From positions 62,001-126,000 of IMG/VR virus record IMGVR_UViG_3300005826_000294: a DNA stretch of 64,000 nucleotides; one strand, written 5' to 3'. The translations under genes were made by a program, and so were the position numbers. Numbering within the stretch: position 1 is the first letter of the stretch; every line of letters starts with the position of its first letter. The notes under the pieces are model-generated. The model worked only from the letters and a program-made list of their open reading frames with translations, searched no databases and was not told the origin of the DNA. Shown here one piece after another: positions 3,796 through 60,609 of the stretch.

Positions 3796-3797
3796 AA

Positions 3798-9319: not shown

Positions 9320-9382
9320 TAGTTATTTCTTATCCTTATATTGTTATACGAAATTTCATATATATAAAATTCAACAAAAAAA

Positions 9383-13795: not shown

Positions 13796-13811
13796 TTATT
13801 ACTCCTTAATA

Positions 13812-14639: not shown

Positions 14640-14645
14640 TGCGAT

Positions 14646-15575: not shown

Positions 15576-15585
15576 TTAATTTTCC

Positions 15586-16562: not shown

Positions 16563-16637
16563 AAAAACCCTCCAAAAAACATAACTTTTTACACTATTAA
16601 TAAAAAAATAATAATATATATATTAGGAGAATATTCT

Positions 16638-17198: not shown

Positions 17199-17216
17199 AC
17201 TTTAAAAGGATCACAT

Positions 17217-21878: not shown

Positions 21879-21890
21879 TTTTATATTTCC

Positions 21891-22628: not shown

Positions 22629-22629
22629 A

Positions 22630-25931: not shown

Positions 25932-25958
25932 TTTATATTCCTTATAATTTATTATATA

Positions 25959-26714: not shown

Positions 26715-26716
26715 TT

Positions 26717-31358: not shown

Positions 31359-31366
31359 TAGTTAAA

Positions 31367-37734: not shown

Positions 37735-39747
37735 TTAACTCCTATAAATTACTTCATAGTCATCTGCAGAACCAGATGCTAAAATATCTATTTCATTATT
37801 ACCACTATCATAATTATAATGATTATATGTTGAAGGTGTATTATTATATTTCATCTTTACTCCATTTCTAAAAACAATAATATCATATCCAGAAGGAGTA
37901 TCTGCGGTTCCAGATCCTCTTGGTGTAGCATTTAAAGCCTCAGAAACCGTTGCTCCTGGAGTTTCGACGCCGGTCGTAGAAAATTCTTCTTCATGTGGTG
38001 TCGAACCAGATCCTGATATTTCAGCCCATTTTATTCCTGTTGCTTCTGAACTATCTGCTGTTAGAACATATCCATCAGAATCTATTGGAAGTCTTGTATT
38101 ATCTGTATCATAAACCCAAAGATCACCTTTTGTTGTTAATGGAGAGGAGGTTCCACTTCCAGATACATAACCATCAAGAGTAATTTGAACAACATTTCCA
38201 TTATTATCTAAATAAAATAATTCTGTATCACCAGCATCATCTTTTGTATATAATAACCCACTATTTTCTAAAGTCGATGGATCATTAATTTCATTTAATG
38301 CTAAATATCCATCAATCTCTAAAGCATCTGTTCCATATCCATCTATAAAAACTGGTTCTCCATTAATAACCCATATTATATTTCCATTAATATATGATTC
38401 GTGAAGGGTTCCAGAACCACTACCTCCTCCGCCTGGTGGAGGTGTCCAAGAGCCATCGGCTCTCAAATAATTAGTCGTTCCCCCTCCAGATGCTGGAGCT
38501 AAACCTTTAAGAGAATCTGTAAAACTATTAAGAATTTCGGTTGCTTGAGAAGAAGTCAAATCAACTGGGTCTCCAGTCCCTGAACCAGAAACTCTACCTT
38601 TGATTGTTGATTGAGCCATATCTGTAAGTTTTGTATTATCAACGACACCAGTATTAATCGTAGGGCCTGGATATGTTCCTGTAAGATCTCCAGAAGCAGA
38701 CCCTATTGGATTTCTTGAATCACTTAATCTAGAATCATTTCCTTGACAAATTGTATTAGCAGAGGAACCATATGTTGGTGTTATAATAGCATCAATATTA
38801 TCTCCTATATTTGTAACACCATTAGAACCTGTAATTGAATCGGTTTGTCCAAATAAATATCCATCTAAACGATATGAAAGACCATAATCATCCATATAAA
38901 TAAGAGCAGAATGTCCTTCTATTTCTTTTGAATATAAAAGACCAGCATTTACTAATGGTAAAGGATCATAAATATCATTTAGAGTTAAATATCCATCAAT
39001 TTCTATAGCATTTTCTTCATTTGCGTCAATAAAAATTGGACCGGAATCCGCATTAATTATTCTTCCTTCGCCACTTCCTCCTTGGTCATATGCTTGATCA
39101 AGAGTGTTATTTAAGGGAATATCTATCCATTTAATACCTAATAATTCTGTACTATCTGCAGATAAAATTTGAGTATCTGTTCCAACGGGAATTCTAGAAG
39201 AAGTTGTTCCATATCCATAAAGATCACCTTTAGTTGTTAAAGGATCAATAACAGATATGTCTTCCCATTTAAATCCAATTGCTTGAGAACTATCAGCCAT
39301 TAAAATTTTGTAATTTGTTCCAATAGGAAGACGATCTTCAACAGTAGAAAACCCATATAAATCACCTTTAGTTGTAAGAGGAGAATCAATTGGTAAACTA
39401 CTAATAGTAATACGTTTTTTATTCCATGAATCAGTACTATCTTCAATTATAAACTCATCAGAAACTGCGGGAGAGCTTTTTAGAGTAATCTGATGAATTT
39501 CGTCAGAGACATTATCGTGTATAGCATCATTGTCTGTTCCAACAAGAGATTCTAAAACAGTTACTCTTTTCCTAACACTTCCAAGTTCTTCTAAATCTGA
39601 TCCTAAAACAGATTGAACTGAAAAAATAGCATCTCTAATTGAAAGTATTTGACTTATATGTGATACATCTTGCTTATTAACAAGGTTGGGCATTTCTGTA
39701 GTTGTATCTAAACTAGTTGGGAAATTACTTTTCCAAGTTTTTACCAT
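37735..39747 (-). CDS. fibre-like virion protein with internal repeats
   Basis: 3x PLTTKGDL...RLP...LxADS...GxKW; 2x TL..AY...IDGYL.LN.I.DP; context. Confidence 0.65.
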   Translation of the reverse strand: MVKTWKSNFPTSLDTTTEMPNLVNKQDVSHISQILSIRDAIFSVQSVLGSDLEELGSVRKRVTVLESLVGTDNDAIHDNVSDEIHQITLKSSPAVSDEFIIEDSTDSWNKKRITISSLPIDSPLTTKGDLYGFSTVEDRLPIGTNYKILMADSSQAIGFKWEDISVIDPLTTKGDLYGYGTTSSRIPVGTDTQILSADSTELLGIKWIDIPLNNTLDQAYDQGGSGEGRIINADSGPIFIDANEENAIEIDGYLTLNDIYDPLPLVNAGLLYSKEIEGHSALIYMDDYGLSYRLDGYLFGQTDSITGSNGVTNIGDNIDAIITPTYGSSANTICQGNDSRLSDSRNPIGSASGDLTGTYPGPTINTGVVDNTKLTDMAQSTIKGRVSGSGTGDPVDLTSSQATEILNSFTDSLKGLAPASGGGTTNYLRADGSWTPPPGGGGSGSGTLHESYINGNIIWVINGEPVFIDGYGTDALEIDGYLALNEINDPSTLENSGLLYTKDDAGDTELFYLDNNGNVVQITLDGYVSGSGTSSPLTTKGDLWVYDTDNTRLPIDSDGYVLTADSSEATGIKWAEISGSGSTPHEEEFSTTGVETPGATVSEALNATPRGSGTADTPSGYDIIVFRNGVKMKYNNTPSTYNHYNYDSGNNEIDILASGSADDYEVIYRS

Positions 39748-39793
39748 TAGCTCTCCTCCGAAAAATTCTATAATTATGTATAGATATTAATAG

Positions 39794-40900
39794 TTAAAGT
39801 ATATTTACTCTAAAACGTTTTATATATTGCCCACCTTCTTGATATATAATTCTTCCTTGAAATGAAACATCATTAGATCCTGAATCACCATCTTGATATA
39901 ACCCTGGATAACCATAAACACCATTTGATCCAGGAGTTCCAGCCGGTCCATTTGCTGCTGATTCATCACAACCACTAACACCTCCTGTTGATCCATCATA
40001 ACCATTCATACCGCCTCCACATCCAGCACCACCTAATCCTCCTGGTCCACCTATTCCATAAGAACCAGCAGAACCACCATCTGCATCTCCACCAATTCCT
40101 GGTTCTCCACTTGAATAAGATGATGAATTTATTGAAAACCATGAACTTGTTGGCCTAGAAGATTCAATAACTATATTTCCTCCATTTCCTCCATTCCTTC
40201 CAGCTCCACCAGTTCCTCCAGCTCCTCCACTTGTAGCACAGCCTCCTGATCCACCAGTTCCACCATTTCCACCATTATAAGAACCTAAATCACAATCAAT
40301 ACTACAAGCAGCATCACCTCCATTTCCTCCATTTCCTCCATTTCCTCCATTTCCTCCATTTCCTCCATTGGCATTCCCACCATTTCCACCATTACCACCA
40401 TCTGATTCTATATTTCCAAGTATAACTTCTACAGAAGATAAAGTAAGATCTCCTCCATTTCCAGCATATCCTCCACCTAAAGCAATTCCGCCATTTGTTG
40501 GATAACCACCAAATTCACCACCCCCACCACTTCCGCCATTTCCTCCACCACTACAAAAGACAGCATCAATCCCATTAGCTCCATTAGTTCCATTGGCCCC
40601 ATTAGTTCCATTAGTTCCATTAGAACTACTACCAGTTCCACCATTATATCCTTTTGTACTTATAGTATTTCCAACACTATATATTTTTCTAATAGCATTA
40701 ATTTCACAATCATTAGAATATCCATTAACATTAGCATGTATATATGCTTCAATACAATTTATAGAAAAATTACTTATAATCGTAGTAGCAGATGATATTG
40801 TAAATATCCCAACATTTATATGAACTCCACCTATATTTCCACCAGAAAAAGTCCAATCATCTCCTCCATGATCACCCCCACCAGTTGCAGTCCAAGTCAT
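39794..40900 (-). CDS. glycine-rich (GGN/GxN repeat) virion-associated protein
   Basis: GTNGTNGANGTNGANG, (GGN)n runs, scattered Cys. Confidence 0.6.
40321..40365. repeat. perfect 9-bp tandem repeat x5 (CATTTCCTC), encodes GGN
   Basis: Read directly. Confidence 0.95.
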
Positions 40901-41735
40901 TTAAAAAATCCTCCCTAAATAAACAATATTTTTTATAATATGAATCATATATGTATTTTGATACATTATCTCTAAACCTAACAGAAGCATCATAACCATT
41001 TTTATTAATTTTAAGACCTTGATAATGAAAACAAATTAATAAATCATTATCAACATATATCTTATCATTTTTTATTTTTAATTGATGTTTACACATATTC
41101 CAATATGCTAAATTGATACCATGATGTTTTGATATCAAAACACCTTTAAACTTTTCTGGTTGATCATAAAAAATATTAAAATATCCTTCTTCGGAAAACC
41201 TTCCCCCTTCTCCTGGTTTCCATAAACACCATTCAATGGTTTTCTTTTGCCACCATTTTAAAAATTTATTTCCCAATTTATCATTTTTGCAAGCATAAAA
41301 TCCACCATTATATCTTCCTTGTCTTGGAGGAGGTTCCCCAGATTCTCGTGATGTAACCATAAAAGAATAACTGCCAAGAATGTCATTTATTTGAGAACTT
41401 TTGTCCCAAAAATATAAATCCGAATCAACATAATAAACACAATTCTCATTATAAATGTCAAATATATAACTAGGAATAAAGACCTTACAAGTTTGAGTAT
41501 AAGCATTCCAAGGTCTTGTTAATCGAGCCTTAAATAAATCTGGATAATAGTTTTCTAAATCATATAATTGGATTGGTATTATATTATTTTTATATTTATA
41601 TGCTTCTTGAAAAACTCTTTGATCTAAACATAAAACATAAATTTTCATTGTTGGATCAAAATCTATTATTGATTTACAACATAACCAACCTTCTATTGAA
41701 AAATTACTATCAAATAACATACATGCCGAAATCAT
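40872..41735 (-). CDS. GT-A glycosyltransferase (GT8-like) among fibre genes, paralog of 29011-29847
   Basis: [45 protein letters not shown]. Confidence 0.75.
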
Positions 41736-43483
41736 TAGTTAAATACCGCATAAAGATCTGTATATTGTAGATATGCTGTATCTGTTCCTGTTGTAACTCT
41801 TAGATTAAACTCAACAACTAGAAGATTTCCAGGTGTTTCTGGAGGGTTTGAAACGGTAATTGTTTGTTGTAAAACTGTTTCTAATGTATTTGTTGTTGTA
41901 AAGGTTGTACTATCCCAAGTAGAAACGCCATCTCCAACTCTAACAATACATTCTGCAGTATCTCCATAACCACCTGAAACCCAAAGACTAACAACTACTA
42001 ACCACTCATCATTAACACGTCCAGTTGGAATTACAAGTCTAAATGTTTTTTTTGTTACTGAACTAGTTCCTGATTCAGCAAATGTTGTATCATCAGAGAA
42101 TACAAGGAAATGTCCTACTGATCCTCCACCACCACCAGATTGAGCTTGAGGTTCCCATTGATTATTATATGTGCTCCATACTAAGACATCACTATCATTT
42201 GGAGAAGAATTTTCTACAGCTCTTCCTTGAATCGCAATAACAGTAGGATCTGGATAAAAACCATCAAGATCACCACTTGCGGCCTCAGTAATTCCTGGTA
42301 TAGCATCTGGAACCCATTGAGAACCACTATTATTCCAAATTAAAACATCTCCATCATTTGGAGACGCAGAATCTACATTATTTCCTTGTAATCCTGTTAC
42401 AGTAATGTTTGTAAAAACTCCTGATACATCACCACCAGAAGAAGTCGTTGTAAATATAAAATCTGCTCCACTTACTTTGGAATTAATACTTGATGGTGTA
42501 TCAGCAATATGTTGGGCTCCGCCCATAGTGTGTGAAGCAACAGATGGAGTTGCAGGAGCCCATTGGGAACCTGTCCAAGATAAAACTTGTCCAGAACTAG
42601 GAGATGTTAAGGAAATGGCCCTTGTTTGAAGTTGTCCAGCATTTTGAGCATCTGCTAAAACTCCACTTAATCCTCCAACATTTATCTCATCAGCTCCACC
42701 ATTTTCATGAGTAGAAGCATGTGCTCCTGGAGCACCAGCAGGTGTTGGAGTCCATTTTGATCCATCATATGCTAAAACTTCTGATGCTGAAGGAGTCGCA
42801 GAATCTATATTTCTTCCTTGAATTTTAACAACAGTAGGATTTGGATATGTTCCATCTAAATCTCCATTAGCATCTGTTATTCCACTTATAATAACATTTA
42901 TTGGAGTCCATTGGGAACCTGTCCAAGATAAAACTTGATTAGATGCAGGAGATCCAGAAATACTATATCCTAATAATCCAACAACAGTAGGATTAGGTAA
43001 AGATCCATTAAGATCTCCTCCAACATTACCACTTCCTGTTGCTGAAATGACAGTAGCATATCCATCTTCTAATGCTCTTAAATTTGAATAAATTCCATCA
43101 CTCCAACCATTAAATTCATTTGTTTCATCTTTAGCAGTTAATCTCATATTAAGATAAGGACTTCTAACACAAACTCCAACTCTTCCTTTTAGTATTCGAT
43201 TTAATGTTAGTTCTACAATATAAGAACCATAAGCATCTGCGGTAAATGATGTTTTAATATCTCCAACAGATCCTGAGTCTACCTCTCTACTCCAAGACAC
43301 AAAACTTAAAGAAGCAGAAGATCCGGGAGGTTTAGAAACAATTCTCCAAGCATATCCATCTACATGAGTTTTATCTGTATTTTCAAACTCGACTAAACTA
43401 TTATATAGTATATCATCATTACTAATATTAGGTTCTCCACCATTTACGCTGATACTAATAATCGCATTTTGTCTATGCGCCAT
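41735..43483 (-). CDS. fibre-like virion protein with repeated modules
   Basis: About five GDL.G.YP.PTV..IQG / P...VL.W.GSQW.P modules. Confidence 0.65.
   Translation of the reverse strand: MAHRQNAIISISVNGGEPNISNDDILYNSLVEFENTDKTHVDGYAWRIVSKPPGSSASLSFVSWSREVDSGSVGDIKTSFTADAYGSYIVELTLNRILKGRVGVCVRSPYLNMRLTAKDETNEFNGWSDGIYSNLRALEDGYATVISATGSGNVGGDLNGSLPNPTVVGLLGYSISGSPASNQVLSWTGSQWTPINVIISGITDANGDLDGTYPNPTVVKIQGRNIDSATPSASEVLAYDGSKWTPTPAGAPGAHASTHENGGADEINVGGLSGVLADAQNAGQLQTRAISLTSPSSGQVLSWTGSQWAPATPSVASHTMGGAQHIADTPSSINSKVSGADFIFTTTSSGGDVSGVFTNITVTGLQGNNVDSASPNDGDVLIWNNSGSQWVPDAIPGITEAASGDLDGFYPDPTVIAIQGRAVENSSPNDSDVLVWSTYNNQWEPQAQSGGGGGSVGHFLVFSDDTTFAESGTSSVTKKTFRLVIPTGRVNDEWLVVVSLWVSGGYGDTAECIVRVGDGVSTWDSTTFTTTNTLETVLQQTITVSNPPETPGNLLVVEFNLRVTTGTDTAYLQYTDLYAVFN
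42560..42937. repeat. exact 30-bp direct repeat (42560-42589 and 42908-42937), encodes QVLSWTGSQW
   Basis: CCATTGGGAACCTGTCCAAGATAAAACTTG at both positions. Confidence 0.9.
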
Positions 43484-43494
43484 TTAATTTCCTC

Positions 43495-46341
43495 CTATAT
43501 TCCTAAAAGGGCTCTCATTTCGCCATCTGTTATATTTTGAGTTGGATTTCTAAAACCTGCTTTCTTTAAATAAACTTCAATAAGAATTTTGGTTCTAATT
43601 GCTGGTTCAGCAATTGCTTCATAACCATCAGTCATATAAAGTGTCATTAAAGAAATATCTGGATCATAATTCAAACCAACAATATCTGTAATATTACCGC
43701 TAAATGGAACGGAAACATTACTTGAAGTTGATTGAATTGAAGGAGCAATTTTAACTTTTCCATCATCAAAATCTGTTGCTTGAACATAAGAATTATCTGA
43801 GAATTTCATAGCATTAAAGCCAGAAGCAGTTTTCCCATTAGCCTCTTCTGCTACAAAAGTATCAAATAATAAAATTCCTGAATATCCATCAATCAATATT
43901 GGACTTCCATATGCATCTGTAATTGGAACATGTAATGATAAATGAGTCATCTCAAAATCAATTTTATAATCTGTTCCATCTGGGTTAAGTATTTCACCTT
44001 CTAATAACAAATCTCCAGGAATAAAATAATTATTCTGTCCACCATTACATCCATTTACAGGATCTGAAATTGTAGTAGCAAGCTTTCTTCTTGAATCACT
44101 TACAACTACTAAATCTGGGATCCATGTTGGAAAGTATTCTATCTTCCAATTAATACTTGAAAATGGAACATTAGCAAAAGAAGAACAAACACTAGGAATT
44201 TCGGCTTCAGCCTTTAATGAATCAGTTAAATTTTCCACAGTAAGCATTAGTCTAGGAAAAGTTGAACCAGCAGAAAAACTTGAAACTATTTTATCAACAA
44301 AATCTTCTATTAATCCCTCATCAACATTATTAATAATACCATTAGAATCTACATCTGATCTTAATAATGTTTCAATATCAACATATCCATCAATAATAAA
44401 CTGTTGAGTCATTGAATCTGAAAGATCAAGAATATTTGTACCTAATCCAACTCCAAGAATTTCTTCAGTATAATTAAGATAATCTTGTCTTATTTCTTGT
44501 AATGTTAAAAGATCTTCAATACTTATAGAGCCATCTCCATTTACATCTCCATAAGCATCATAAAATAACTCTGCCTTGGTAATACGATAGGTTTCACAAC
44601 AACTTGTTGAATTAGGAGTTAATAATGATCCTACCCAATTATGTTGTAATAAATCAGCATTAGGATAAAGTATATTAAACTCATTTCTTCTAGCCAATCC
44701 AATTATATTTGTTATTCCATTTACTTCGGCAATATTTGCCCTTGGGTTCCTATCTCTTGCACAACCTAATAATAAAGGTGTTGGGTTAGTTTCAAGTAAA
44801 GTATTTAATCTAGACAAACTAATAAGAGAAAAACTAGGAACAGGTTTTACTCTTGAAGAAATAAGATTTCCTGTTCTTTGATCTTGAGTTGGTTCAGAAT
44901 ATTCTAATTGTCTTTCCATAATTATATAGTTATATGCGTCTCTTGTTACTAAACTAAATTCATGAGGACCAGAAACATAAGGAACCTCAGTATTTGTTGA
45001 ATCTTTTTGTATTTTTGGAACTTCAATCCCAATTCCATCTTCATATGCTATTCCATCAGCTACTTTAATATAATCACCATAAACAATATACCACATATCA
45101 CTATCTTTTATATTAATCCATTGAGTTCCATCATAATAGATCATATATCCTGTGTCGCCACGTTGAGGAGCCTCTTCTATTATCAAATCTCCTACACTTG
45201 TGTCTCCAGATCTATGAATTGTAAAAGCATAATATTTATCAGGTGTTACTGGTGATCTTAAAGGATCTGAAATATTAGTATTTGTAAATACAAAATCTAC
45301 TATTTGAGAGTAACCATCTAATACAATACCTTGTTTTTCTAAATCTATTTTATCAAGAGAAAGTTGCCCAATAATTCTAGGATCTGGGTCAAAATCTTCT
45401 GAATTATCTGGTACAGGAGAAACTGGGCAATTTACCTCGGTTTGAAGTTCATAAACAGATAAAGTAACGGCTCCAGACCAATCATATCCATCAACTGAAT
45501 CATAGGCAGACGAAAGTAGAATAGATATTTTTTGAATATTATTACCATTGGACTGAAATTTTTGTCCAATTTTGGTTGTTACATCTAAAGCAGATAAAGT
45601 TCTTTGTTGAGACGATACTAAACCAATATCCAAATCAGCAATAGATTTTGCATCATCATCAGCTCTAATAGCAGTATCTAACATTGTAGTTACTGTTGTT
45701 GTCCAATTTGCTGGAATTAATTCAGCAAAAAACTTATTTGGTTGGGAAGTTTGATATGCTAATATTGTATCACGAGATGCTTCAAGAGAATCAACTTCAA
45801 CAATTAAGCAACGTCCTACAAGATTACCAGAAACAATAGCATTTGATCTACTTCCACGAAGATTCCCAGCAAAATCACCAAAAATTATAGAACGTATTTT
45901 TTTATATCTTCCACGAGTTAATTGAGTTCCATTCTCATTAAAAATAAGATCATCATGTACTAATTCATCACCAAATGTGTCTCCTATAATAGAAACTTTT
46001 GATTGGGATTTTCCTTCTAAAACCACATCAGATAAGGTTATAGAAAGTTGAACTCCTTTAATAACATCACTTACGACATCATCATTATCATATATATTTT
46101 GTCCATCAAAAGAATAAGCATCAAGTAATGCTTGTTGTTCTGAACTAAGATTATTAGTATCAAGTATAACATTCTTTATAGTTGTATTTACAGTAATACC
46201 ACTGCTAAAAAAGTTATGAATGTTGGAAGCATCAATATCTTTATGTCTAGTTTGTTCATCAACCATATCATCTTTATCTACCTGCATTCCATCAAACCAA
46301 TTAACTCGGGATATTCCTACCGGTAATTTTTTGGTAATCAT
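43495..46341 (-). CDS. virion structural protein with a dockerin-like duplicated Ca-binding motif
   Basis: N-terminal RVNWFDGMQV; GDVNGDGSISIEDLL and SDVDSNGIINNVD; context. Confidence 0.6.
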   Translation of the reverse strand: MITKKLPVGISRVNWFDGMQVDKDDMVDEQTRHKDIDASNIHNFFSSGITVNTTIKNVILDTNNLSSEQQALLDAYSFDGQNIYDNDDVVSDVIKGVQLSITLSDVVLEGKSQSKVSIIGDTFGDELVHDDLIFNENGTQLTRGRYKKIRSIIFGDFAGNLRGSRSNAIVSGNLVGRCLIVEVDSLEASRDTILAYQTSQPNKFFAELIPANWTTTVTTMLDTAIRADDDAKSIADLDIGLVSSQQRTLSALDVTTKIGQKFQSNGNNIQKISILLSSAYDSVDGYDWSGAVTLSVYELQTEVNCPVSPVPDNSEDFDPDPRIIGQLSLDKIDLEKQGIVLDGYSQIVDFVFTNTNISDPLRSPVTPDKYYAFTIHRSGDTSVGDLIIEEAPQRGDTGYMIYYDGTQWINIKDSDMWYIVYGDYIKVADGIAYEDGIGIEVPKIQKDSTNTEVPYVSGPHEFSLVTRDAYNYIIMERQLEYSEPTQDQRTGNLISSRVKPVPSFSLISLSRLNTLLETNPTPLLLGCARDRNPRANIAEVNGITNIIGLARRNEFNILYPNADLLQHNWVGSLLTPNSTSCCETYRITKAELFYDAYGDVNGDGSISIEDLLTLQEIRQDYLNYTEEILGVGLGTNILDLSDSMTQQFIIDGYVDIETLLRSDVDSNGIINNVDEGLIEDFVDKIVSSFSAGSTFPRLMLTVENLTDSLKAEAEIPSVCSSFANVPFSSINWKIEYFPTWIPDLVVVSDSRRKLATTISDPVNGCNGGQNNYFIPGDLLLEGEILNPDGTDYKIDFEMTHLSLHVPITDAYGSPILIDGYSGILLFDTFVAEEANGKTASGFNAMKFSDNSYVQATDFDDGKVKIAPSIQSTSSNVSVPFSGNITDIVGLNYDPDISLMTLYMTDGYEAIAEPAIRTKILIEVYLKKAGFRNPTQNITDGEMRALLGI

Positions 46342-46352
46342 TTATTATTCTC

Positions 46353-49300: not shown

Positions 49301-52300
49301 CACCAGCAGGGACGTCTAAATATCCTTTAAATCTATATGAGTTTGGAACCTCATCTCCATCAACAAATAAATGTAATTCATCTCTTTGTTCTATAGTTCC
49401 CATTTTCCATGAAACTGCTAAATGATGAGTTTCTCCAGGTAACCAATTGTTAATATTATGACTTAAAACTTTGATACGTCTATTATTATCATATATTCTA
49501 AACTTAATAAAACCTGATCCATCTTTATATAAAGACATCCTACATTTATTTGTTTCAACACCAGTGTCAAAAAAGTAATGTAAATTATCGGAGGTTAAAT
49601 CAATTCCATCAAATCCTGCGATAGTCCCAAATGAATCATATGCGTCATAAGCATCAAACGACATATTCATCATATCATAATCATCAATAATAAATGAGAA
49701 TTTTACACTTTCATCCGTAGACCATAATCTATCATTTATTTCATCAATTTCATATCCATCATAACCATCATATCCAGAAGCCGTGGTTGCTATTTTAACA
49801 TTATAGAATTCTCCAGAAGTTGATATTATTCCAGAAAAAAGTCTTTCTTCATCAATAGGAGCCCTTGTTCTTAATCTCCAACAATTAAAACCTGTATCAA
49901 ACCAAATAAAATATCCTGAAACTCCATGACTATGAAGATTACTTGGAACACCAAGAACACTAGGATTATTATTATCTAAATCAAAAGGAATAGAAGTAGG
50001 ATTTATTGCAGTAGAACCTATATATATTTTATTAACATCTATTTCATTATTATCCATAAATAAATCAAATGTTAATGTCGCATCATTCTGAATTCCACTC
50101 CAATTTGGAATAATAAATGCTTCCCAAGTTCCTTCACTAAATTTCATATTAGAACTAGCAGGAAAAATTGCTGTTTGACTATCTTGATCTAATAATAATC
50201 CATTTCCAAATTTTCCATTTGCGTATCCTGGATTTGAGGTCAATTCTATTGGTAAAAGATTAAAGTAATCTCTGCCTAAAATCCATTCCTGAAAAACAGA
50301 TTCTGTAATATTTGGTGTAATTTGTGTAAATGCTTCTACTAATGCTTCAATTGAAGGAATTGTGGGCCCTTTCATAAATGATTGTAATGATCCAGAAACA
50401 GCATTTCGATAAGTCTCCCTATCCAAATTATCTGGAATAACAGATAGTTCTGGTAAGCTTGTCAAGACTCCAAAATTATCACGTAAAGCATTTCTTAATG
50501 CTCCATATCTATATGAAACATAATATGTTTCACCTTCATATAAAGAACTTGATATACTCCAATCAAGAATATTATCTCCATATTCATAACTAACTAAAAG
50601 TTCATCTTTAGAATATGTATAATCAATAAAAACATCTCCAACAGAATAATCTACAAGAACGGCAGCATTATTTCTTAATCTCGCATGATATGTTATATTA
50701 ACATTTTGTCCAATAATATTTGTACCAGATGGTAAATATATTCTATTATTTGTAACATCAACATATCCATCAGAACCTTGATTAAAATAATTTAATGATC
50801 CATTAGAAATACTTGTAGCAGATGTTAATTCAACCAATCCCTGAGAATATAAATCATCAATTCGTCCCGCCTCAACATATTCTCTTTCTCCATTTGTTTG
50901 TACTATTCCCGAGTCAGAAATTAAAACTCCAGAACTATTTAAACTTATTGTTTTAAAAGAAAATGTAGCATTAGTAGCGAAATTTATTGGATTACTTGTA
51001 GTCTGTAAATCTGTTACTTGAAATATTTTATATAATTTAAAAATATCGGAAGAAGTTATTATAGTATTATTATTTACAGTTATAACAGTTCCAGAAACTT
51101 CTATTTCTCCAGCATGATTTAAAGAAGGAACATTTACAACATCATCACTAATACTTCCTACTTCAAAAATTTCTATATTTGGAAGGCTTACCGAAGAACT
51201 CCTATAGATATCATCTACTCTAATAATATGTCTATTTCTTGTTTGTATATTATTTCTTTTATAAGTTGCATCACCAATATCTGTACTTTGTCCAGCAACT
51301 ACTGCTAAATATACTATTCCAGATTCATAATCAACAATATAATCTCCTACATTTAAAAGTCGTTGTAAATTTTCCGAGATAGTTTTATCTGGACTATAAT
51401 ATAATTCATTAACAAATAAATCTTGTTCAGAAAATATTAATGAAGTATTAAAATTGGCACCTAAAAAGCCTCCAATAGAAGACATAATATCACTATCTGT
51501 TAATTCTATTGTGAAAATATCAAATAAAGTTTCTGAAGAAGTAGCGGTTATTACTAATTGAGATTGAATTACAGATTCATATGTAACCGCCTCTCTTAAA
51601 ACATTTAATGTTCTTGGAGGCTGAGATGCCGAAAAATATACTTCATTTCCATTAATCCTAATAGGTGTGTAAAGTTCCCCAGTAGTTTCATTGTATATCC
51701 TAAAAACTTCATTTACAGGATAATTTATAGTTTTTAATCCAATATCTTCAATAAGGCGGTTTTCCACTCTTTCATTTATAATTTCTACATGAGAAGAAAA
51801 ATTGAAATCTGATCCATTTGCAAAAGTGTCTTCATAGTTAAATGTAATTATAGCAGAATTTCCTCTTAATTCCCTACTCGGGACAGAAGCTATTTCATCT
51901 AAATCCGAAAAGAAAATATAATCCAAATTAGCTTGATATTCTTTTTTATATGTATAATTAGCAACTGGTGGAATAGAAGTTGTCCCATCTACTCCAGATC
52001 CATCTACTCCAAAAACAAAAACTTGTCCTGTACTATAATTAATAGAATATTCACCAGTCTGATTTGGAAAACTTGAATTACTAAAAGCAATTTCTGCTGT
52101 AAAAGCAGGATGCTTTTTAGTAGGATTAAAATTTGTTGCCGGATCAAGCCAAACTACACCATTAAGAGTGGGTATGTTTCCATTAGAATCTACAACTGGT
52201 GCATTTGATAGAAAAAATGATGTAGCAACTGCTGAAACACTTTCTCTTACAACATTTATAGTTGTAAAAACTTCTATGGAATCAGGATCAACATCTCTAC

Positions 52301-53264: not shown

Positions 53265-53266
53265 TT

Positions 53267-56200
53267 TTATCGCTCCTCTATATTAACAGAAATTGTTCCC
53301 GGAGCAATATATTCATTACCCTCGGCAGAAATACTTTCCTTCGTACCAGAAATATTTGCTTTATTAAATCTTGTAACTCTAACTCTATCTACACCAGCAA
53401 CATTATAGATATTACTTACTATATCTGAAGCATCTAATGTTGTCCCAAGTTCCTCTGAATTTAATATAGAACTAATATTATCAGCAACATCCTGTTTAAC
53501 AGTTTCTTCTTTATCTTTAAAAGATGTATCTATTACTACATATACGGTTACATCAATTTTTATCTCAGTAGCAGATTTTACTAAAACATCTGCTGTAATT
53601 GGTCTAGAATCTTCAATTGCCTCTGTAGAATCAACAATAAGTTTATTATATTCATAATTAACAGTTATTCTTTCACCCTCTTTTGGAGCAGTATAAGTAT
53701 AATCTACAGAATATGTAGAACTTAATGCTGGTTGATTTAAACTATCAATAGTTATATTACCCTGAATATTTCCTATTGAATCTTGAAAACCAGATATTCT
53801 GTTAATAGAATATATATTTCCAAATCGTTTTTCTGTAATTCCTACACCATTTTTAGAGAAAAATAAATCTTCTGTATCAAATTGCTGGGCATAATAAAAA
53901 ACAACTCTTAATTGTGTCCCTGTACTAATAGGATTTGATGTATTTATTGAAGTATCTGACAAACCAACTTCTGTTTTACTTAAAGATGTATTCTGTAAAG
54001 AATTTGCTTTATCCCATACATTATTATAGATAGAATAATTAGTTACATCATATGTTGTGTTAACAGATGATACTTCTTCAGTTACCGTTAATTCAATATT
54101 TTCAACTGATATTAAACGAGCTATATATATTGTTGATGGTAATGTTGCTGTATCAGAGAGACCTTTTGATCTTCTTATTAATATTGCTAAATCTAATTCA
54201 TCATTAGCAGTAGCAGTATAAATTCCAGTTATTTTATTTATTGTAGTCCCAGAGATACGTAATAACCCAGAAGTTGATAAACCACCTATATTGACTTGAA
54301 GTCTAGATGGAGATCTTCTCTTATTAGAAATAATTGTTGTTCCAGAAAATTCGTTTTGGACTGGTTGGTAACCATCTATATTTTGAAAACTATTTAAATT
54401 ATTTGTAGAAATAGGAAGCTCAGTTATATCAGTTTTCGGGATTAAATTAAAAAAATCAGCAACATAATTTACTCTAACGCTTGTGCCTGTTGTGGTCCCA
54501 GCATCAGAAGGAAGAGTTATTTGATTATTTAAAACAGTTCCAGATCCATAACTATCACTAGTAAATACATCATTTAAACTATAAATAACATTAACATTAT
54601 CTCCAACTTCAGCCAAAGTATCTGATGGAAGAGTAATTGTTTTATTAGAAATACTACCATTATTTAAATAAGTATTATATACTTCTGGAGAACCAGAAAT
54701 GCTAATATCTTTTATACTATGTAAATTATTAGTATTTGATGAAGTTACAACAGATTTTCCAGCAATAACACTACTAGTTTCTGATTTATATGTATTAACC
54801 GATAAAACTCTACTAATTGGAAAATCAGTAGTAATATTCATATTTTCATAGGCATCTACTAAAACTGTTTTAATTTCATCTCTTATATAATTAGAAAAAC
54901 CCCATTCAATTGAATCTTGAGCTTCATTAAGAGGATCTATTGGATTTAAATTATCTAAATCTATATGTGGATCAAAACTATAAATCCAGGTATAATCAAC
55001 TTGTAGAATATCGCTAGATGTTGGCAAAGTTCTTCCACTTATTTGTATTCTTCCTGTTGTATTTATACTTCCAGAATCATCAGGAGTTTGATCTTCAATA
55101 ACATATCTTTCACCTGTTGTTAAATTAAAAACTCTACTAACGGTCCTAACAGGATAATGTTTAAGTTGAATAAAGTTTCTTGAACTTGAAACAGAAGATT
55201 TTTCATTTGTTATTTGAATATCTTGTTTAACTGCCTCTATTGTTAAAATATCTGTAAATCCTAGGCCATCTATACTATTAGAACCTGTTTTAGTATTTGA
55301 TTCTCCTTGAAGCTGAATTTTATTATCTGTCCAACCTAATTTATCTAATCCAAATGGACTACCTGACGCTTCTCCTGTATCTTTAATAAGTTTAAAATTA
55401 CCTTGTAAATTACCTGTTTCATCTAAATATTGTTCAACAAAATTAGGCCCAGACAAACTTCCACTAACAGAAACCAAAGAAGAAACAGGTTGTTCTGGAA
55501 TTTGTGCTCCTTGTGATAATACAGCAACTCTTCTAGAATTTATAGTTAAAGAAGTGCTTGGAGTTAAACTACTTTGCCCTAAAACATAATTATTTAAAGA
55601 ATCAGTTGGATCATCTTTACCACTTTGATCATTAAAAATAAAACTATCCGTTCCAGATTGGGCATTTGTTCCCATAACATATATATCTACTCTTCCACCT
55701 GTTCCAGGTTCTGAAACAATTTTATTTCCATCATTATCATATCCAACAATGGTCCCATCTCTAACCATTAATGGATCACCTGGTTCTACAACAAGGGCAT
55801 CAATAGCATCAGATAAACTTAATATTGTGCTTCTATATGCTACTGATGTTCCTACATTAGCTCCAGCAAATGTAGCAAGAACTTTTGCTTTAAGTTCTGA
55901 ATCTAATTCTAAATCTGTTCCTCCCGTAAAAGATGTTAAATTTGTAACATTATTTACATCACTAGCACTTGTTGTAATTATTGAATATGATGCTATATTT
56001 CCAATTGACCCAGCACTTTGAGCTTCAACAGAAGCCTCAATCGCAAATTCATCATTAATATTAACAGTAGCAAGTTCTTGTCTCAATCTTGTTGCTGTAG
56101 CCCTTAAAGCATTAGATTGAGATGTATTTATAGATAAAGTAGATACTGTTAAAAATGGAATTCCATTTCTTGTTCTAACTATTGTTCCAGAAGGAATATT

Positions 56201-56503
56201 AAAATCATCATCAATAGATTTAAATGTAAATACAACAGTTCCTATTGATTTTGTCCCATTCTGTTTTATAACTCCAAAATTACTGGCGTAATTAACTAAA
56301 TCTTGACCAGAAATATTTAGGATAGATTGTAGACTAGATAATTCTTTAAGAGCTTCATATATGTCTGAAACTTGCAAAGCTTGAAGATCAATCATAAGAT
56401 CTCTCGCAACCGTTCCAGGTTTTGTGTCTAAACTTGGTTGTGTTAGATTTAGTTGTTGAAGCATATCTAAAACAATATTATTAAAACTTTTAAAAGTTAC
56501 CAT
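53267..56503 (-). CDS. baseplate J-like wedge protein with large insertion
   Basis: TKPGTVARDL, GTVVFT, VEAQSAGSIGNI, FTGGTDLELDSEL, GGRVDIYV; C-terminal NVAGVDRVRV. Confidence 0.85.
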   Translation of the reverse strand: MVTFKSFNNIVLDMLQQLNLTQPSLDTKPGTVARDLMIDLQALQVSDIYEALKELSSLQSILNISGQDLVNYASNFGVIKQNGTKSIGTVVFTFKSIDDDFNIPSGTIVRTRNGIPFLTVSTLSINTSQSNALRATATRLRQELATVNINDEFAIEASVEAQSAGSIGNIASYSIITTSASDVNNVTNLTSFTGGTDLELDSELKAKVLATFAGANVGTSVAYRSTILSLSDAIDALVVEPGDPLMVRDGTIVGYDNDGNKIVSEPGTGGRVDIYVMGTNAQSGTDSFIFNDQSGKDDPTDSLNNYVLGQSSLTPSTSLTINSRRVAVLSQGAQIPEQPVSSLVSVSGSLSGPNFVEQYLDETGNLQGNFKLIKDTGEASGSPFGLDKLGWTDNKIQLQGESNTKTGSNSIDGLGFTDILTIEAVKQDIQITNEKSSVSSSRNFIQLKHYPVRTVSRVFNLTTGERYVIEDQTPDDSGSINTTGRIQISGRTLPTSSDILQVDYTWIYSFDPHIDLDNLNPIDPLNEAQDSIEWGFSNYIRDEIKTVLVDAYENMNITTDFPISRVLSVNTYKSETSSVIAGKSVVTSSNTNNLHSIKDISISGSPEVYNTYLNNGSISNKTITLPSDTLAEVGDNVNVIYSLNDVFTSDSYGSGTVLNNQITLPSDAGTTTGTSVRVNYVADFFNLIPKTDITELPISTNNLNSFQNIDGYQPVQNEFSGTTIISNKRRSPSRLQVNIGGLSTSGLLRISGTTINKITGIYTATANDELDLAILIRRSKGLSDTATLPSTIYIARLISVENIELTVTEEVSSVNTTYDVTNYSIYNNVWDKANSLQNTSLSKTEVGLSDTSINTSNPISTGTQLRVVFYYAQQFDTEDLFFSKNGVGITEKRFGNIYSINRISGFQDSIGNIQGNITIDSLNQPALSSTYSVDYTYTAPKEGERITVNYEYNKLIVDSTEAIEDSRPITADVLVKSATEIKIDVTVYVVIDTSFKDKEETVKQDVADNISSILNSEELGTTLDASDIVSNIYNVAGVDRVRVTRFNKANISGTKESISAEGNEYIAPGTISVNIEER

Positions 56504-56504
56504 A

Positions 56505-56936
56505 TTAAGCCACCCTCAAAGTGAAAGTATCTTCCAGTATTGTTAATTTTCTGGTCAAAACAGATATTTTTATTTCATATAGTCTTGGGTCTTCATTGTT
56601 TCGTAGAACAGAAACCCCTCTAATAGATGCTATTGCTTCTCCAGCCGATATATATTGAGTTCTTCCTTGTACTTTTTGTAATGCTACTAAATTATTTAGA
56701 GCTGTTTGTACAGATCTCGCTACTTCGGTTTCTAATTGAGTAGGATCAAGTAGATTACCAATAATACGAGTTCCAAGACTACTACCATACCAACGAAAAA
56801 TTTTATTAGAACCTGCGGATGTTAATATGATTTTAAGAATATCTTGAACAAGTTTTTCATTATCATGAACTGTTTGTAATGTTCCATCAGGATTTATTCC
56901 CAGATCATTATTGACGATTTTTAAGTCATAAGACAT
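56505..56936 (-). CDS. gp25/gpW-like baseplate wedge (sheath initiator) protein
   Basis: MSYDLKIVNNDL, KLVQDILKIILT..GS...WYGS, EAIASI..V; directly upstream of baseplate J. Confidence 0.8.
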   Translation of the reverse strand: MSYDLKIVNNDLGINPDGTLQTVHDNEKLVQDILKIILTSAGSNKIFRWYGSSLGTRIIGNLLDPTQLETEVARSVQTALNNLVALQKVQGRTQYISAGEAIASIRGVSVLRNNEDPRLYEIKISVLTRKLTILEDTFTLRVA

Positions 56937-58600
56937 TATGTCTCCTTTGTTGAAACCGCACATCGCGGTGGAGTAGAAGATTTATCATCGGAAGATCTTA
57001 TAGATCTTGCCTGTTTCCCTTGATTTTTTCTATTTTGAGTAGCATCAACTTCAATTTGAAATAAAGAAAAAAGTTGCTCAATAACTATTTCTAAATCTTG
57101 TATAGCAATCATAGCATTAGAAGCTTCTGGTTTTACATCTTTAATAATAGTTTTCAATACCTTATCAGTCTTCATTAAATCAATTGTGTATTTATCTAAT
57201 AAATTTAAAAGAGTTTCTCTTTTTACTATAAATAAAGAGGCAATGGTGATTACTATATCTGGTAAAGAAAGACCAGAAAATTCTCCCGTCATAAGATCCA
57301 ATTCAAGACGAATTCTTTCTAAATTATTAATGTTCTTTTTAGATTGAGCAATTATACTATCTCTATCTTCTATGTTTTTTTGTAAATTATATCTTATTAA
57401 CATATTGAATGGATTTTGTAAAGCACTTGGAGTTATATTTCTTGTACTACTCTTTTTTGGATCCGTTTTTTCATTTTCATCCGTAGGTAATAATGAAATT
57501 AAAGCTTCTTCTAACGCAATAACAGAATTTAATTTTTTTAATTTTTCTCCTTCTTCCGTTCCATCCAAAACAGTAGAAATTTCTATTCTTTTTCCAAACA
57601 TACTAGCACGAGAAGAACTTGTTTTAATAGCAATAACAGGACTTATTTTTCTTAAAAGTCTTACTCTTTGTTCATTAATTTTAACCCATTTTCTCGCTAA
57701 ATTTTTAATAGCATATAGAAATTTGATAATTATAAATTGCTCTAATCTATTTGTTTGTGTAAATAAAAAATCACCAGAAAATATTTCGTTAAATTGTGTT
57801 TCTCCAATAAAATATTTTATAGATGATGTGATATCTTCTTCTGTTTTATTTTCTTCATCTGTCTGAGAATTCCCATATTCTACAAATCTTATTCTAATTA
57901 CTTGTTCTAAAAATGGTTTTCTTAATATAGTTTCTCCATCAATTCTTCTTTCTTTAACTGAAAGAGTAAATGGTCTTGCTATTTGATTTCTTAAAGGTAA
58001 AACTCTATGAAAACTTGGAATTAATGGAAATAATTGCTTAAAAATAATACGGATATTTTCCGTATCTGGCCCATTTCCTGGATAAGCTCTCGGGATAAAT
58101 GCTTCTGTTTTTCCTAACGATTCAGATGGAATATTTGCCTTAACATCAGCAGGACTACAAATAGCGAGACCCATACGCTCATTCATATTTTGTTTTCCAA
58201 TTTCTTCATTAATTTTCTTTAATTCTGATTTTCTTTTCTCTAAAATTTCTGCTACATTCCCCTCTAAATCTTTTCCCGATGGACTAACAGTAGCATAAAT
58301 TTGTTTTTTATTATCTACTATTTCTTTATTAGCCAATGTACTATTCACACTAGCTCCAAATCCAGAATTGAGAAATTTAACATCATCTTTTTTATTACTT
58401 TCTTTGTCAGAGATAATAACAAAATAAGGTAACCCAATTAATCTAAAAAAAGCATCAATACGAGTTTCAGTTGGAGTTTTATAAGTATCTCCAGTTTTAT
58501 CATCAATTAATTCATCAAACGAACGAACATTTTCAATTTCATTCATTATGCTTTTAGCAAACCCAATAATATCAAATTCTTTTTCAGAAATATCCGCCAT
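56936..58600 (-). CDS. hypothetical protein (baseplate locus)
   Basis: 554-aa charged, helical-looking ORF; no motif recognised. Confidence 0.7.
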   Translation of the reverse strand: MADISEKEFDIIGFAKSIMNEIENVRSFDELIDDKTGDTYKTPTETRIDAFFRLIGLPYFVIISDKESNKKDDVKFLNSGFGASVNSTLANKEIVDNKKQIYATVSPSGKDLEGNVAEILEKRKSELKKINEEIGKQNMNERMGLAICSPADVKANIPSESLGKTEAFIPRAYPGNGPDTENIRIIFKQLFPLIPSFHRVLPLRNQIARPFTLSVKERRIDGETILRKPFLEQVIRIRFVEYGNSQTDEENKTEEDITSSIKYFIGETQFNEIFSGDFLFTQTNRLEQFIIIKFLYAIKNLARKWVKINEQRVRLLRKISPVIAIKTSSSRASMFGKRIEISTVLDGTEEGEKLKKLNSVIALEEALISLLPTDENEKTDPKKSSTRNITPSALQNPFNMLIRYNLQKNIEDRDSIIAQSKKNINNLERIRLELDLMTGEFSGLSLPDIVITIASLFIVKRETLLNLLDKYTIDLMKTDKVLKTIIKDVKPEASNAMIAIQDLEIVIEQLFSLFQIEVDATQNRKNQGKQARSIRSSDDKSSTPPRCAVSTKET

Positions 58601-60609
58601 TATTTACTCCGACCTACTGGTTCTGTTGATACTTCTCCAGTTATAGCTAATGACCTACGTCTTGCCTCTTCAGAAGTTATAAATTCAACCGAAACTTCTT
58701 TAGGAATAAGATTATTACCATTAAAATATGATATATATCTTCCTCCAATTTTAGCCTTAATATTTGCTATACCTGGTGTAAAACTAGTTATTGTAGAAAT
58801 ATATTGTCCTGTAGTATTGTTTTCTATAACTTCCCCAACGGACCCAAAATTTGTTTCAAAATCAATTTCAACAATACCAGGAGGAACAGTTACACCAAGT
58901 AATCCTCCATTTCTATCATATGGTATTGCTTGAATATTAGCATCTAATCCAATTATTTGAATTCTTGGTTCAACATCAAATTCGGATGTCTCAGGATCTA
59001 CAAGAACAGGATATATTTCTTTCGCATAATCTATAGCATCATTTTTAAAACCATTAAGTTGATCTGATACACAATCATAAAGTCCAGTTATTTCAGTAGC
59101 AATTGTTTGATAATTATTTAAAACATATTCTGTATCAACATCAATTGGTGCTACTTTTCCTATACATTCACTAATATTATTAACCAAACTATCAAAATCT
59201 GGTAAGTCAGGAAGAGTAGCTTCCATATCAGGAAATCTATTAACTAATGCTTCTCTTGTTGCTTTAACAGCAGGATGACAACCTACATTTATTAAACCAT
59301 GACGCAATAATTCTTCATGGTTAATTTCAAGTTCAAAATTTAAATTATTAGTTATAGAAGGAACCGAAGGTTCAAGCTTCCACCTAAGATGTTCAGATGG
59401 AGCACCATAACTCCATACATCAGACGATCTTTTAAATAAAACATTATATCCATCATAATAATTTTGTATCTTCCAAGATCCACCATTTATTTGAGATTGA
59501 CTAATTCCTCTTATATCCGACATAGTTACATAACTTCCAACACTACTGGACGTAAATGTTTCTGTTTTTGTATTAAATCTCGCTTCAAGAGGATCAGTTA
59601 ATGGAACATTATTAATATCAGTGCTAGAAAGGTAACCATCCGAAATATATTCTGGCGGAAGTTGATATAATGTAGAATATCCGCTTGAATCAACAGAAGT
59701 TACAACATATTTTTGAACAGCACCACTAGATTGAGTAATATTCAAAATATATGGGACATCTTCTTCATTTTTTACTTCAGCATAATCTAACCCTCTTGGA
59801 AAAAAGTTTCTCATTTGTATAAAATCTAATTTATGAGATGAAGAATAAAATAGAATTTGAAAACTAAATCCATTAGAACCAAATAAAATTACAAATTGTC
59901 CATCTGTCCCAGAAAAACTTGTTTGTTGTAATATTTCAGGACAAATTTCATCTCCACCACATTCAGAACAACTTCCTCCAGAACCTCCGCAAGGAATTCC
60001 TATACCTGCCGACAAAAGAGCTTTAACCATAACCCATATTCCATTTAACACAGCAAGAATTCCAAGAATATTATATAATTCTTTTATTAGAGCTGCCAAT
60101 TTAAAACCTACTGCTTCTACAGCATCTTGATTATCATCATTAAAAGCATCAATAAGATCCTGAATATTTTGAATAATATCTAAAATAATTGGAAGTAATA
60201 CTTCAAGAATATATTCTACTATTGCTAGAATAATTTTAACCAAACATATAATAATTGCGGGTAAAGCAAATTGAGGGAAAATTAAAATAAAATCAGGAAT
60301 ACATGTTCCAAAAAGTCTAATTATAGCAAAAATAATACAAAATGGATTAACAAGACAACATAATACATCAATAATACAAGCAACCATTTTAAGAACAACG
60401 GTCACTACTCCATATGCTGACGTGAAAGTGCTAAGAATTCTCGTATGATCAGCAATAATATCCCCTAAATCTATTGTAGCACTAGGAAGAGAAGATGGTC
60501 GTATCTGTGCCCCTGCGGGACAAGTACATTTCAATTGATCAAGTTGTTCCGAATATGTTTTCGGTTGCTCTTCTTTTTGAAAATTATTTCTATTAGGATC
60601 TGTTGCCAT
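58600..60609 (-). CDS. hypothetical protein: Cys-rich hydrophobic N-terminal region, C-terminal invasin/Ig-like domain
   Basis: ACIIDVLCCLVNPFCIIFAIIRLF...; C-terminal ANIQAIPYD..G...GQYISTITSFTPGIANIKAKIGG. Confidence 0.55.
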   Translation of the reverse strand: MATDPNRNNFQKEEQPKTYSEQLDQLKCTCPAGAQIRPSSLPSATIDLGDIIADHTRILSTFTSAYGVVTVVLKMVACIIDVLCCLVNPFCIIFAIIRLFGTCIPDFILIFPQFALPAIIICLVKIILAIVEYILEVLLPIILDIIQNIQDLIDAFNDDNQDAVEAVGFKLAALIKELYNILGILAVLNGIWVMVKALLSAGIGIPCGGSGGSCSECGGDEICPEILQQTSFSGTDGQFVILFGSNGFSFQILFYSSSHKLDFIQMRNFFPRGLDYAEVKNEEDVPYILNITQSSGAVQKYVVTSVDSSGYSTLYQLPPEYISDGYLSSTDINNVPLTDPLEARFNTKTETFTSSSVGSYVTMSDIRGISQSQINGGSWKIQNYYDGYNVLFKRSSDVWSYGAPSEHLRWKLEPSVPSITNNLNFELEINHEELLRHGLINVGCHPAVKATREALVNRFPDMEATLPDLPDFDSLVNNISECIGKVAPIDVDTEYVLNNYQTIATEITGLYDCVSDQLNGFKNDAIDYAKEIYPVLVDPETSEFDVEPRIQIIGLDANIQAIPYDRNGGLLGVTVPPGIVEIDFETNFGSVGEVIENNTTGQYISTITSFTPGIANIKAKIGGRYISYFNGNNLIPKEVSVEFITSEEARRRSLAITGEVSTEPVGRSK

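Follow-up and report, generated by a model that had tools for sequence, protein, structure and literature searches.

A D-(G/A/S)-Y motif kept on outward-facing tail proteins of a clade of uncultured jumbo phages, a candidate tyrosine glycosylation sequon

In Bacteroidota, proteins are O-glycosylated at the sequon D-(S/T)-(A/I/L/V/M/T), the glycan passing en bloc, and outside the cytoplasm, from a lipid carrier to the protein. Among viruses, chloroviruses and mimivirus (on its fibrils) rely on virus-encoded glycosylation machinery, and the spikes of enveloped viruses maintain the number of their N-glycan sequons while the positions drift among surface loops. Here we describe a tripeptide, D-G-Y and less often D-A-Y or D-S-Y, which selection has maintained as a short linear motif on the surface of outward-facing virion proteins in a clade of jumbo phages. 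It was found in a stretch of 64,000 nucleotides (nt; positions 62,001 to 126,000, hereafter the window) of the metagenomic IMG/VR contig IMGVR_UViG_3300005826_000294 (JGI Ga0074477_1264118), about 302-312 kb long and derived from a jumbo myovirus. A sequence-only reading of the window had proposed that the motif is a tyrosine glycosylation or sulfation sequon, by which the phage decorates its own virion. Precedents exist for a tyrosine acceptor as well as for decoration of phage particles. In S-layers of Paenibacillus and Thermoanaerobacter, Tyr is O-glycosylated in an extracytoplasmic process with lipid-carrier glycans and a multi-pass membrane transferase (PMC2943079). Mycobacteriophages, according to the part of PMC12619734 that cites Freeman et al. 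2023, encode glycosyltransferases (GTs) that glycosylate virion proteins at C-terminal sites of Ser/Thr type.

The mycobacteriophage system is similar to the present locus in that phage GT genes lie beside structural genes and, in that account, decorate virion proteins inside the cell. There, however, the described targets are the C-termini of capsid and tail-tube subunits and few GTs are involved, whereas here a dispersed internal tripeptide is found on baseplate, sheath and fibre proteins, accompanied by a 34-kb block of sugar genes, and the modification is a putative one. GT genes are linked to structural genes in the window, too, with GT4, GT2 and GT1-like genes directly downstream of the baseplate and fibre genes. 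As for the S-layers, they share the putative Tyr acceptor, and their deoxy-amino sugar and heptose-type pathways are similar to the ones found here. The S-layer transferase, on the other hand, is a WsfB-like membrane O-oligosaccharyltransferase with a Wzy_C domain, and no such protein occurs in the glycan region of the window; we also know of no D-G-Y consensus for S-layer Tyr glycosylation. The Bacteroidota sequon is likewise three residues long, Asp-anchored, directional and located at surface-exposed sites. It differs in having a Ser/Thr acceptor next to the Asp, while here Tyr stands two residues on and the residue after Asp is small, its hydroxyl not being conserved. It also differs in depending on a flippase and an O-oligosaccharyltransferase, neither of which is encoded here, where the substrates are cytoplasmic. 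Giant viruses share a large viral set of sugar-nucleotide enzymes and soluble GTs, particle surface proteins and atypical acceptors, but they infect eukaryotes, and their glycans are N- or Ser/Thr-linked in other acceptor contexts. The spike sequons of enveloped viruses are alike in evolutionary behaviour only, since chemistry and machinery differ. Finally, a generic D-G tight turn or Asx-turn cap also places Asp-Gly at a strand exit, but such turns need no Tyr, favour N-G at least as much and are not restricted to a clade, whereas here NGY occurs at chance level and Tyr is required. A full-text literature search for "DGY motif" found no paper.

Six minus-strand virion open reading frames (ORFs) of the window, together 6250 amino acids (aa), contain 31 D[GA]Y sites, namely 22 DGY and 9 DAY. 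The counts given for each of these ORFs by the sequence-only reading were reproduced exactly, and both tandem arrays it had pointed out, GYDGYDGY and DAYDAYD, were found (Table 1). Shuffling of residues within each protein, a control that reading had called for, yielded 2.37±1.51 D[GA]Y and a maximum of 10 in 5000 shuffles. When all 13 virion ORFs were considered, 22 DGY contrasted with 2.26 expected by composition (p = 6.5e-15), in line with the earlier rough estimate of about two, and with 4.59 under a dipeptide Markov model (p = 4e-9), while 9 DAY contrasted with 1.36 expected. By enrichment, DGY ranked first and DAY second among all 8000 tripeptides in these ORFs; the lowest tripeptide p across 200 shuffled sets was 5e-6. 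DGF, DGW, NGY, EGY and SGY were all at chance level, and so were the reversed YGD and YAD, indicating that the motif is directional. The DNA pattern GAYGSNTAY was restricted to frame 0 of the coding strand and codon usage was ordinary, therefore the signal acts at the protein level. The contexts of the sites are in general unrelated, as had been stated, except that the 670-aa fibre contains an internal duplication (site 251 pairs with 469/479, and 295 with 525), so that about 28 of the 31 sites are independent. The enrichment is real, and stronger than first stated.

The motif marks outward-facing virion proteins only, i.e. the outer part of the sheath, the peripheral baseplate and the fibres. 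All three DGY of the sheath are within its non-conserved N-terminal part, and two further outer proteins encoded upstream also bear the motif (1626 aa, 4 + 2 sites; 143 aa, 2 sites). No site was present in the tube, in the central 747-aa, 261-aa and 1568-aa proteins, or in the gp25-like, 554-aa and 751-aa proteins. The earlier statements that the GC-rich distal fibre and the ORFs at 60620-62875 and 62876-63964 are devoid of the motif, and that the glycan-region proteins are poor in it, were borne out by counts of zero in each of the former and of 2 DGY and 2 DAY, i.e. chance level, in 34 minus-strand ORFs (10,858 aa) of the latter.

In an AlphaFold2 model of the 948-aa peripheral baseplate protein p948, with a predicted local distance difference test score (pLDDT) of 86.6, all nine sites are placed in coil, abutting the start or end of a strand or helix. 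For the 2303-aa giant baseplate protein, a fragment model of residues 1050-1900, weaker than that of p948, places both tandem arrays in coil or flexible loops with pLDDT below 50 and assigns the other sites to the ends of strands or to a hairpin loop of four residues. Altogether, the motif is predicted to be partly or wholly coil, at or just past the end of a strand or helix, in 15 of 17 mapped sites; of the two exceptions, 284 would lie in a within-loop bridge and 1700 inside a strand end. Mapping on predicted structures, another check suggested by the sequence-only reading, thus points to loops at the ends of secondary-structure elements. In the local profile, hydrophobic residues make up about 60% at positions -3, -1 and +5, compared to a background of 34%. 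Relative to Tyr, Asp is fixed at -2 and Gly, Ala or Ser occupies -1, while the other flanks are only mildly acidic. The best fold match of p948 was the phi812 peripheral baseplate chain 9eui_Q, and dockerins matched as well; no solved structure related by sequence was found for the three proteins queried.

Seven relatives identified via the J protein (55-78% identity) showed the same enrichment in the same proteins. In the p948 family, comprising 106 proteins at 30-80% identity, there were 581 DGY against 27 expected and 165 DAY against 22, compared to 18 DGF against 31. For the clade as a whole, 66 non-redundant IMG/VR loci with guanine-cytosine (GC) contents of 27-57% were counted over the J part, the giant protein and p948 (281,081 aa). 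They contained 863 DGY where 62 were expected, each locus having 4-29 against about one. Even GC-rich members, in which Tyr makes up only 2.2% of residues, still had 8 DGY, so that over a third of their tyrosines belonged to this tripeptide. Both gene order and motif are retained at 57-59% GC in L012/L037 (IMGVR_UViG_3300012931_000759); the hosts of the clade therefore differ widely in base composition. No enrichment was observed in 16 tail, fibre, sheath and capsid proteins of T4 (9008 aa; 4 DGY vs 1.9 expected) or in the tail module of phage G (2 DGY vs 1.7), which rules out a generic feature of myovirus tails. No close cultured relative was found, and phage G and mycobacteriophages matched the J core only. 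A link to the 'moraphage' lineage (PMC12619734) was not established, as the contig is unnamed in the main text of that paper.

One subclade of the p948 family (P0155, P0159, P0160 and P0170) has 0 DGY in about 6800 aa. It keeps the fold, and therefore the fold does not need the motif. However, these genes are found in other genomic surroundings, where a few sugar genes are scattered, and the subclade is therefore no clean glycan-free control. In one phage of this subclade, a 1089-aa protein (locus L025, 21138-24404, minus strand; Tyr 6.3%) contains 5 NGY and 3 DGY, which may be a different Tyr-containing motif of another lineage.

At 55-80% identity many sites are fixed: Asp and Tyr are constant, and the middle residue can be Gly, Ala or Ser. 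Thus DGY710 of the J/gp6-like wedge is invariant in 8 orthologues and DGY324 of the 669-aa protein in 7. Orthologues of the giant protein in 10 relatives retain 4-8 DGY, with DGY, DAY or AGY variants in place of GYDGYDGY, and DSYDSYDSY or DAYDSY in place of DAYDAYD. Over longer distances the positions move. Among 62 homologues, 360 DGY (mean 5.8 per protein) were distributed over 48 alignment columns, none with more than 90% occupancy and 33 with less than 10%, although alignment error at 30% identity somewhat inflates this apparent turnover. The columns at which the motif was gained differ between the related P0125 (15 DGY) and P0120 (11), and P0123, 46% identical to P0125, has none. Judged from these alignments, a steady count with mobile positions is the behaviour of a short recognition motif or sequon, not of an element determined by the fold. 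When motif tyrosines were lost, Phe accounted for 3% of replacements, compared to 46% at other Tyr-majority columns (79 p948 sequences); in four protein families, the corresponding figures were 0 of 30 and 114 of 190. Ser and Thr together made up 20-33% of the replacements. This pattern indicates that the motif tyrosine is treated differently from ordinary tyrosines.

The glycan region of the window (Table 1) encodes four enzymes of the GDP-mannose-dehydratase/epimerase type (GDP, guanosine diphosphate), one of them intein-interrupted; an RmlA-like/RmlB-like/FdtA/DegT set for a dTDP-3-amino-3,6-dideoxyhexose (dTDP, deoxythymidine diphosphate); and SIS, HAD and nucleotidyltransferase genes of the types used for activated heptoses. 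Its transferases belong to GT2, GT4, GT1-like and GT47-like types. A hydropathy scan of the 36 glycan-region proteins detected no multi-pass membrane protein (at most two hydrophobic segments in each), and neither flippase, polymerase nor oligosaccharyltransferase is encoded there, with no Pfam match of Wzx, Wzy or Wzy_C type. The absence of multi-pass membrane proteins among the sugar enzymes fits cytoplasmic action. As for the connection to the tail genes, in 41 of the 42 loci with enough flanking sequence the p948 homologue was followed downstream, within 10 kb, by a homologue of the C-terminal half of the GT4 protein (median gap 260 nt), the single exception being the present phage, in which fibre genes intervene. 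GT2 paralogues came next in 35 of the 42. Because the pairing of GT4 and tail genes holds down to 30% identity and across the GC range, it speaks for, but does not prove, a functional link between these soluble enzymes and the tail module. In the PDB, the sequences of the GT2 (29847-31358) and GT4 proteins had generic matches only.

Table 1. Features of the window with their positions, strand and motif content
Feature	Position	Strand	Details
Glycan region	237..33604 (237-34500 in wider bounds)	-	nucleotide-sugar synthesis, at least 9 soluble glycosyltransferases, methyltransferases
Two-part GT4 glycosyltransferase, 745 aa	31367..33604	-	Pfam Glycos_transf_1/Glyco_trans_1_4, residues 562-716
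Distal fibre, 988 aa, GC about 52%	34766..37732	-	0 DGY, 0 DAY; serves as internal negative control
Tail fibre, 670 aa	37735..39747	-	6 DGY, 0 DAY; PHROG tail-protein matches
Sites of the 670-aa fibre	38989-38997, 38857-38865, 38335-38343	-	DGY251, DGY295, DGY469
Sites of the 670-aa fibre (continued)	38305-38313, 38167-38175, 38068-38076	-	DGY479, DGY525, DGY558
Fibre/baseplate-associated protein, 582 aa	41735..43483	-	2 DGY, 1 DAY; PHROG tail fiber match
Sites of the 582-aa protein	43352-43360, 43229-43237, 43058-43066	-	DGY42, DAY83, DGY140
Peripheral baseplate protein p948, 948 aa	43495..46341	-	5 DGY, 4 DAY; central dockerin-like module
Giant baseplate protein, 2303 aa	46353..53264	-	6 DGY, 3 DAY, 1 DSY; Laminin_G_3 domain
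Tandem DAYDAYD in the 2303-aa protein	49635..49655	-	residues 1204-1210
Tandem GYDGYDGY in the 2303-aa protein	49752..49775	-	residues 1164-1171
Baseplate J/gp6-like wedge, 1078 aa	53267..56503	-	DAY550 (54848-54856), DGY710 (54368-54376), also DSY650; Pfam Baseplate_J residues 66-283, PHROG baseplate wedge residues 2-262
Inner baseplate: gp25-like sheath initiator and 554-aa protein	56505..58600	-	0 sites; Pfam Sheath_initiator
Baseplate protein, 669 aa	58600..60609	-	2 DGY: DGY324 (59632-59640), DGY386 (59446-59454)
Central tail: 751-aa protein and C-terminal part of 1568-aa lysin-like hub	60620..63964	-	0 sites; PHROG tail protein with lysin activity

To explain these observations, we tentatively favour a model in which the motif tyrosine is O-glycosylated in the cytoplasm by the soluble transferases of the phage, with the conserved GT4 as candidate initiator. 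We infer all three of its components: the modification of the Tyr, its glycan nature and the initiating enzyme. According to the model, the acceptor would be the hydroxyl of a Tyr that stands two residues after Asp, in a loop just past the end of a strand or helix. The GT4, an invariant follower of the baseplate genes, would be the first enzyme, after which GT2 and GT1 enzymes would lengthen the glycan, using the GDP- and dTDP-sugars that the neighbouring genes supply, resulting in a sugar coat on the tail periphery. Of the original proposal, the model keeps a sequon on outer virion proteins, in favour of which are the reality, specificity and protein-level nature of the motif, its loop locations, its sequon-like evolution and the syntenic soluble GT genes, and drops sulfation. 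In a wider form, which we consider possible though rather doubtful, a whole clade of uncultured jumbo phages would have its own cytoplasmic Tyr O-glycosylation directed by a D-(G/A/S)-Y sequon on exposed loops of sheath, baseplate and fibres, the attachment points shifting between lineages.

Several observations weigh against glycosylation. The hydrophobic -3/-1 pattern and the conservation of many sites over 50-80% identity would also be expected from loop-capping, and the avoidance of Phe is partly due to surface exposure and rests on related sequences. To our knowledge, no tyrosine glycosylation has been reported on a phage and no GT reading D-G-Y is known. The glycan genes could serve another target, for example DNA or the host surface. 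Every relative has both the motif and GT genes, and their co-occurrence is therefore inseparable from shared ancestry; for the same reason the comparison suggested earlier, between phages with the glycan cluster and phages without it, is non-discriminating. In L029/L092, GT4+GT2+GT2 are retained while only 4 DGY occur in 4641 aa and the p948 homologue has none, and the phage of another low-DGY outlier, P0085, still has GTs as well. None of the downstream gene clusters was associated with DGY density, save cluster 14, present in four loci (1.71 vs 3.27 DGY per 1000 aa, uncorrected p = 0.001). Nor did DGY density in p948 correlate with that of the upstream proteins (rho = 0.01).

An explanation that needs no enzyme, somewhat unlikely in our view, is a non-covalent surface patch in which Asp and Tyr at the start of loops create many weak binding sites on the tail periphery. 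Their ligands could be host surface glycans, cations or another part of the virion, for example the Gly/Asn-rich protein at 39794-40900, and the patch would aid adsorption or assembly. This would account for the restriction to outer proteins, the loop positions, the need for both the Tyr hydroxyl and Asp, the turnover and the fact that motif density is tracked by no gene; the dockerin-like module of p948 is also a sign that protein-protein docking occurs in the baseplate. However, three contiguous residues rarely form a binding site. Furthermore, the strict N-to-C order (YGD is not enriched) and the flexible tandem arrays fit an enzyme reading a peptide better, and the invariant GT4 neighbour is left unexplained.

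It is unlikely that the motif is a lineage-specific structural element, i.e. a strand-exit or loop-capping turn favoured in beta-sandwich domains for folding or stability, in which Asp caps the backbone and Tyr packs on the sheet edge. The hydrophobic profile described above speaks for it, as do the modelled positions exactly at the ends of secondary-structure elements with their preference for Gly, and the invariance of several sites over 55-80% identity. But N-G, which forms tight turns more often than any other pair, shows no enrichment in front of Tyr; Ala or Ser can replace Gly, and Tyr is almost never exchanged for Phe (0-3%). T4 and phage G lack the motif enrichment, proteins without a single DGY share the fold, conservation of a column throughout the clade does not occur, and three tandem motifs cannot each be a turn.

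Some other modification of the same Tyr by a phage or host enzyme (sulfation, phosphorylation, nucleotidylation or a phosphocholine-type transfer) is improbable. The motif itself speaks for it as much as for glycosylation, tyrosine sulfation sites typically have an acidic residue close by, and a fusion of a nucleoside triphosphate (NTP)-transferase with an APH-like kinase is encoded at 3798-5150. That fusion is, however, more simply a sugar- or small-molecule-activating enzyme, and a protein-kinase domain was absent from all 36 glycan-region proteins. As to the sulfotransferase that had been put forward as a possible reader of the motif, no such domain was found in 35 of these proteins scanned singly, nor in the remaining ORF of the window's glycan region (34 aa, overlapping 24611-25015), which was covered by a pooled scan only. 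Sulfation is therefore without support in the window.

Still less probable is a covalent cross-link that stiffens the baseplate, either an Asp-Lys isopeptide or dityrosine. The strand core of streptococcal CnaB2/SpyTag, V-D-A-Y, takes part in an isopeptide bond and the D-S-Y-G of resilin in a dityrosine link; the hydrophobic-x-hydrophobic-D-A-Y context found here is like the former, and D-S-Y variants do occur. Yet isopeptide triads are buried and co-conserved, in contrast to the loops, rapid turnover and flexible tandem arrays seen here. Chance, composition, a repeated domain or a DNA-level signal has practically no probability left: although duplication within the 670-aa fibre accounts for about three sites, a single repeated domain is otherwise ruled out by the unrelated contexts, composition or dipeptide bias by the shuffle and Markov controls, and a DNA-level cause by the restriction to frame 0, the normal codons and persistence in 66 phages from 27% to 57% GC.

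If the Tyr is indeed modified, soluble enzymes would be reading a tyrosine sequon, a protein-glycosylation code of a new kind; neither such a sequon nor a glycan coat directed by one would have a described precedent among phages. Phages would then be able, as giant and enveloped viruses are, to cover their particles with sugars and to let this coat evolve, which would bear on how hosts are recognised, how well proteases and defence systems are resisted and how stable the particles are. It would also offer a compact tag-and-enzyme pair for glyco-engineering. Even without modification, a three-residue motif that is 14-fold enriched in 66 phages, its count kept and its positions mobile, is a testable signature of an undescribed tail-surface function.

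The window has a GC content of 23-30%, and nearly all its genes are on the minus strand. Positions 34766-63964 (minus strand) comprise the tail end of the structural module. In minus-strand order, the lysin-like hub is followed by the 751-aa protein, the 669-aa baseplate protein, the 554-aa protein, the gp25-like sheath initiator and the J/gp6-like wedge, and then by the 2303-aa protein, p948 with its dockerin-like module and several fibre proteins. Tube and sheath genes are located immediately upstream, beyond the window. The Pfam Sheath_initiator and Baseplate_J matches, the PHROG baseplate wedge match and the upstream tube and sheath genes identify a myovirus baseplate module. In the wedge, all motif sites are outside the conserved J core. 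The dockerin-like part of p948 (residues ~595-690) is a double calcium loop, detected as Pfam PF00404 in most homologues and matching cellulosomal dockerins in fold, which suggests docking of the cohesin-dockerin type inside a phage tail.

Further observations concern neighbouring genes. Among the central tail proteins, the 747-aa protein encoded after the tube gene (locus L021, 11617-13860) has only 0.8% Tyr and no family match, and is possibly the tape measure, and the 1568-aa protein (L021, 14645-19351) matches 'tail protein with lysin activity'. The fibre cluster includes a 368-aa protein (39794-40900, minus strand) without family match, which consists of 31% glycine in long GGNGGN-type runs and contains several Cys. 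In the glycan region, the intein-split gene (10689-12878, minus strand) encodes a GDP-mannose 4,6-dehydratase, with the Pfam Intein_splicing match at residues 168-522, between the enzyme halves. The fusion at 3798-5150 (minus strand), composed of a MobA-like nucleotidyltransferase and an APH-type kinase, resembles choline- or sugar-activating enzymes and may add a non-sugar substituent to the glycan. Inside the same sugar gene block, the gene at 9383-10699 (minus strand) encodes five DUF4379 treble-clef zinc-finger repeats (E = 1e-85); a related DUF723/DUF4379 gene is located near the sheath gene (L021, 3366-4448). A radical-SAM/SPASM protein (15846-16562, minus strand) adjoins two unannotated plus-strand ORFs (16524-17198 and 17217-17918), and this segment (15846-17918) is the sole strand switch in the window, with the GC skew flipping at the same place.

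The 988-aa distal fibre matches nothing in Pfam or PHROG, and with a GC content of about 52% in a genome of about 28% it looks like a recent import from a GC-rich source. Between its gene and that of the GT4 lies a LAGLIDADG homing endonuclease with an N-terminal helix-turn-helix (33601-34500, minus strand), a possible agent of the import. Further homing endonucleases are found around the sheath and tube genes (L021, 7181-9999).

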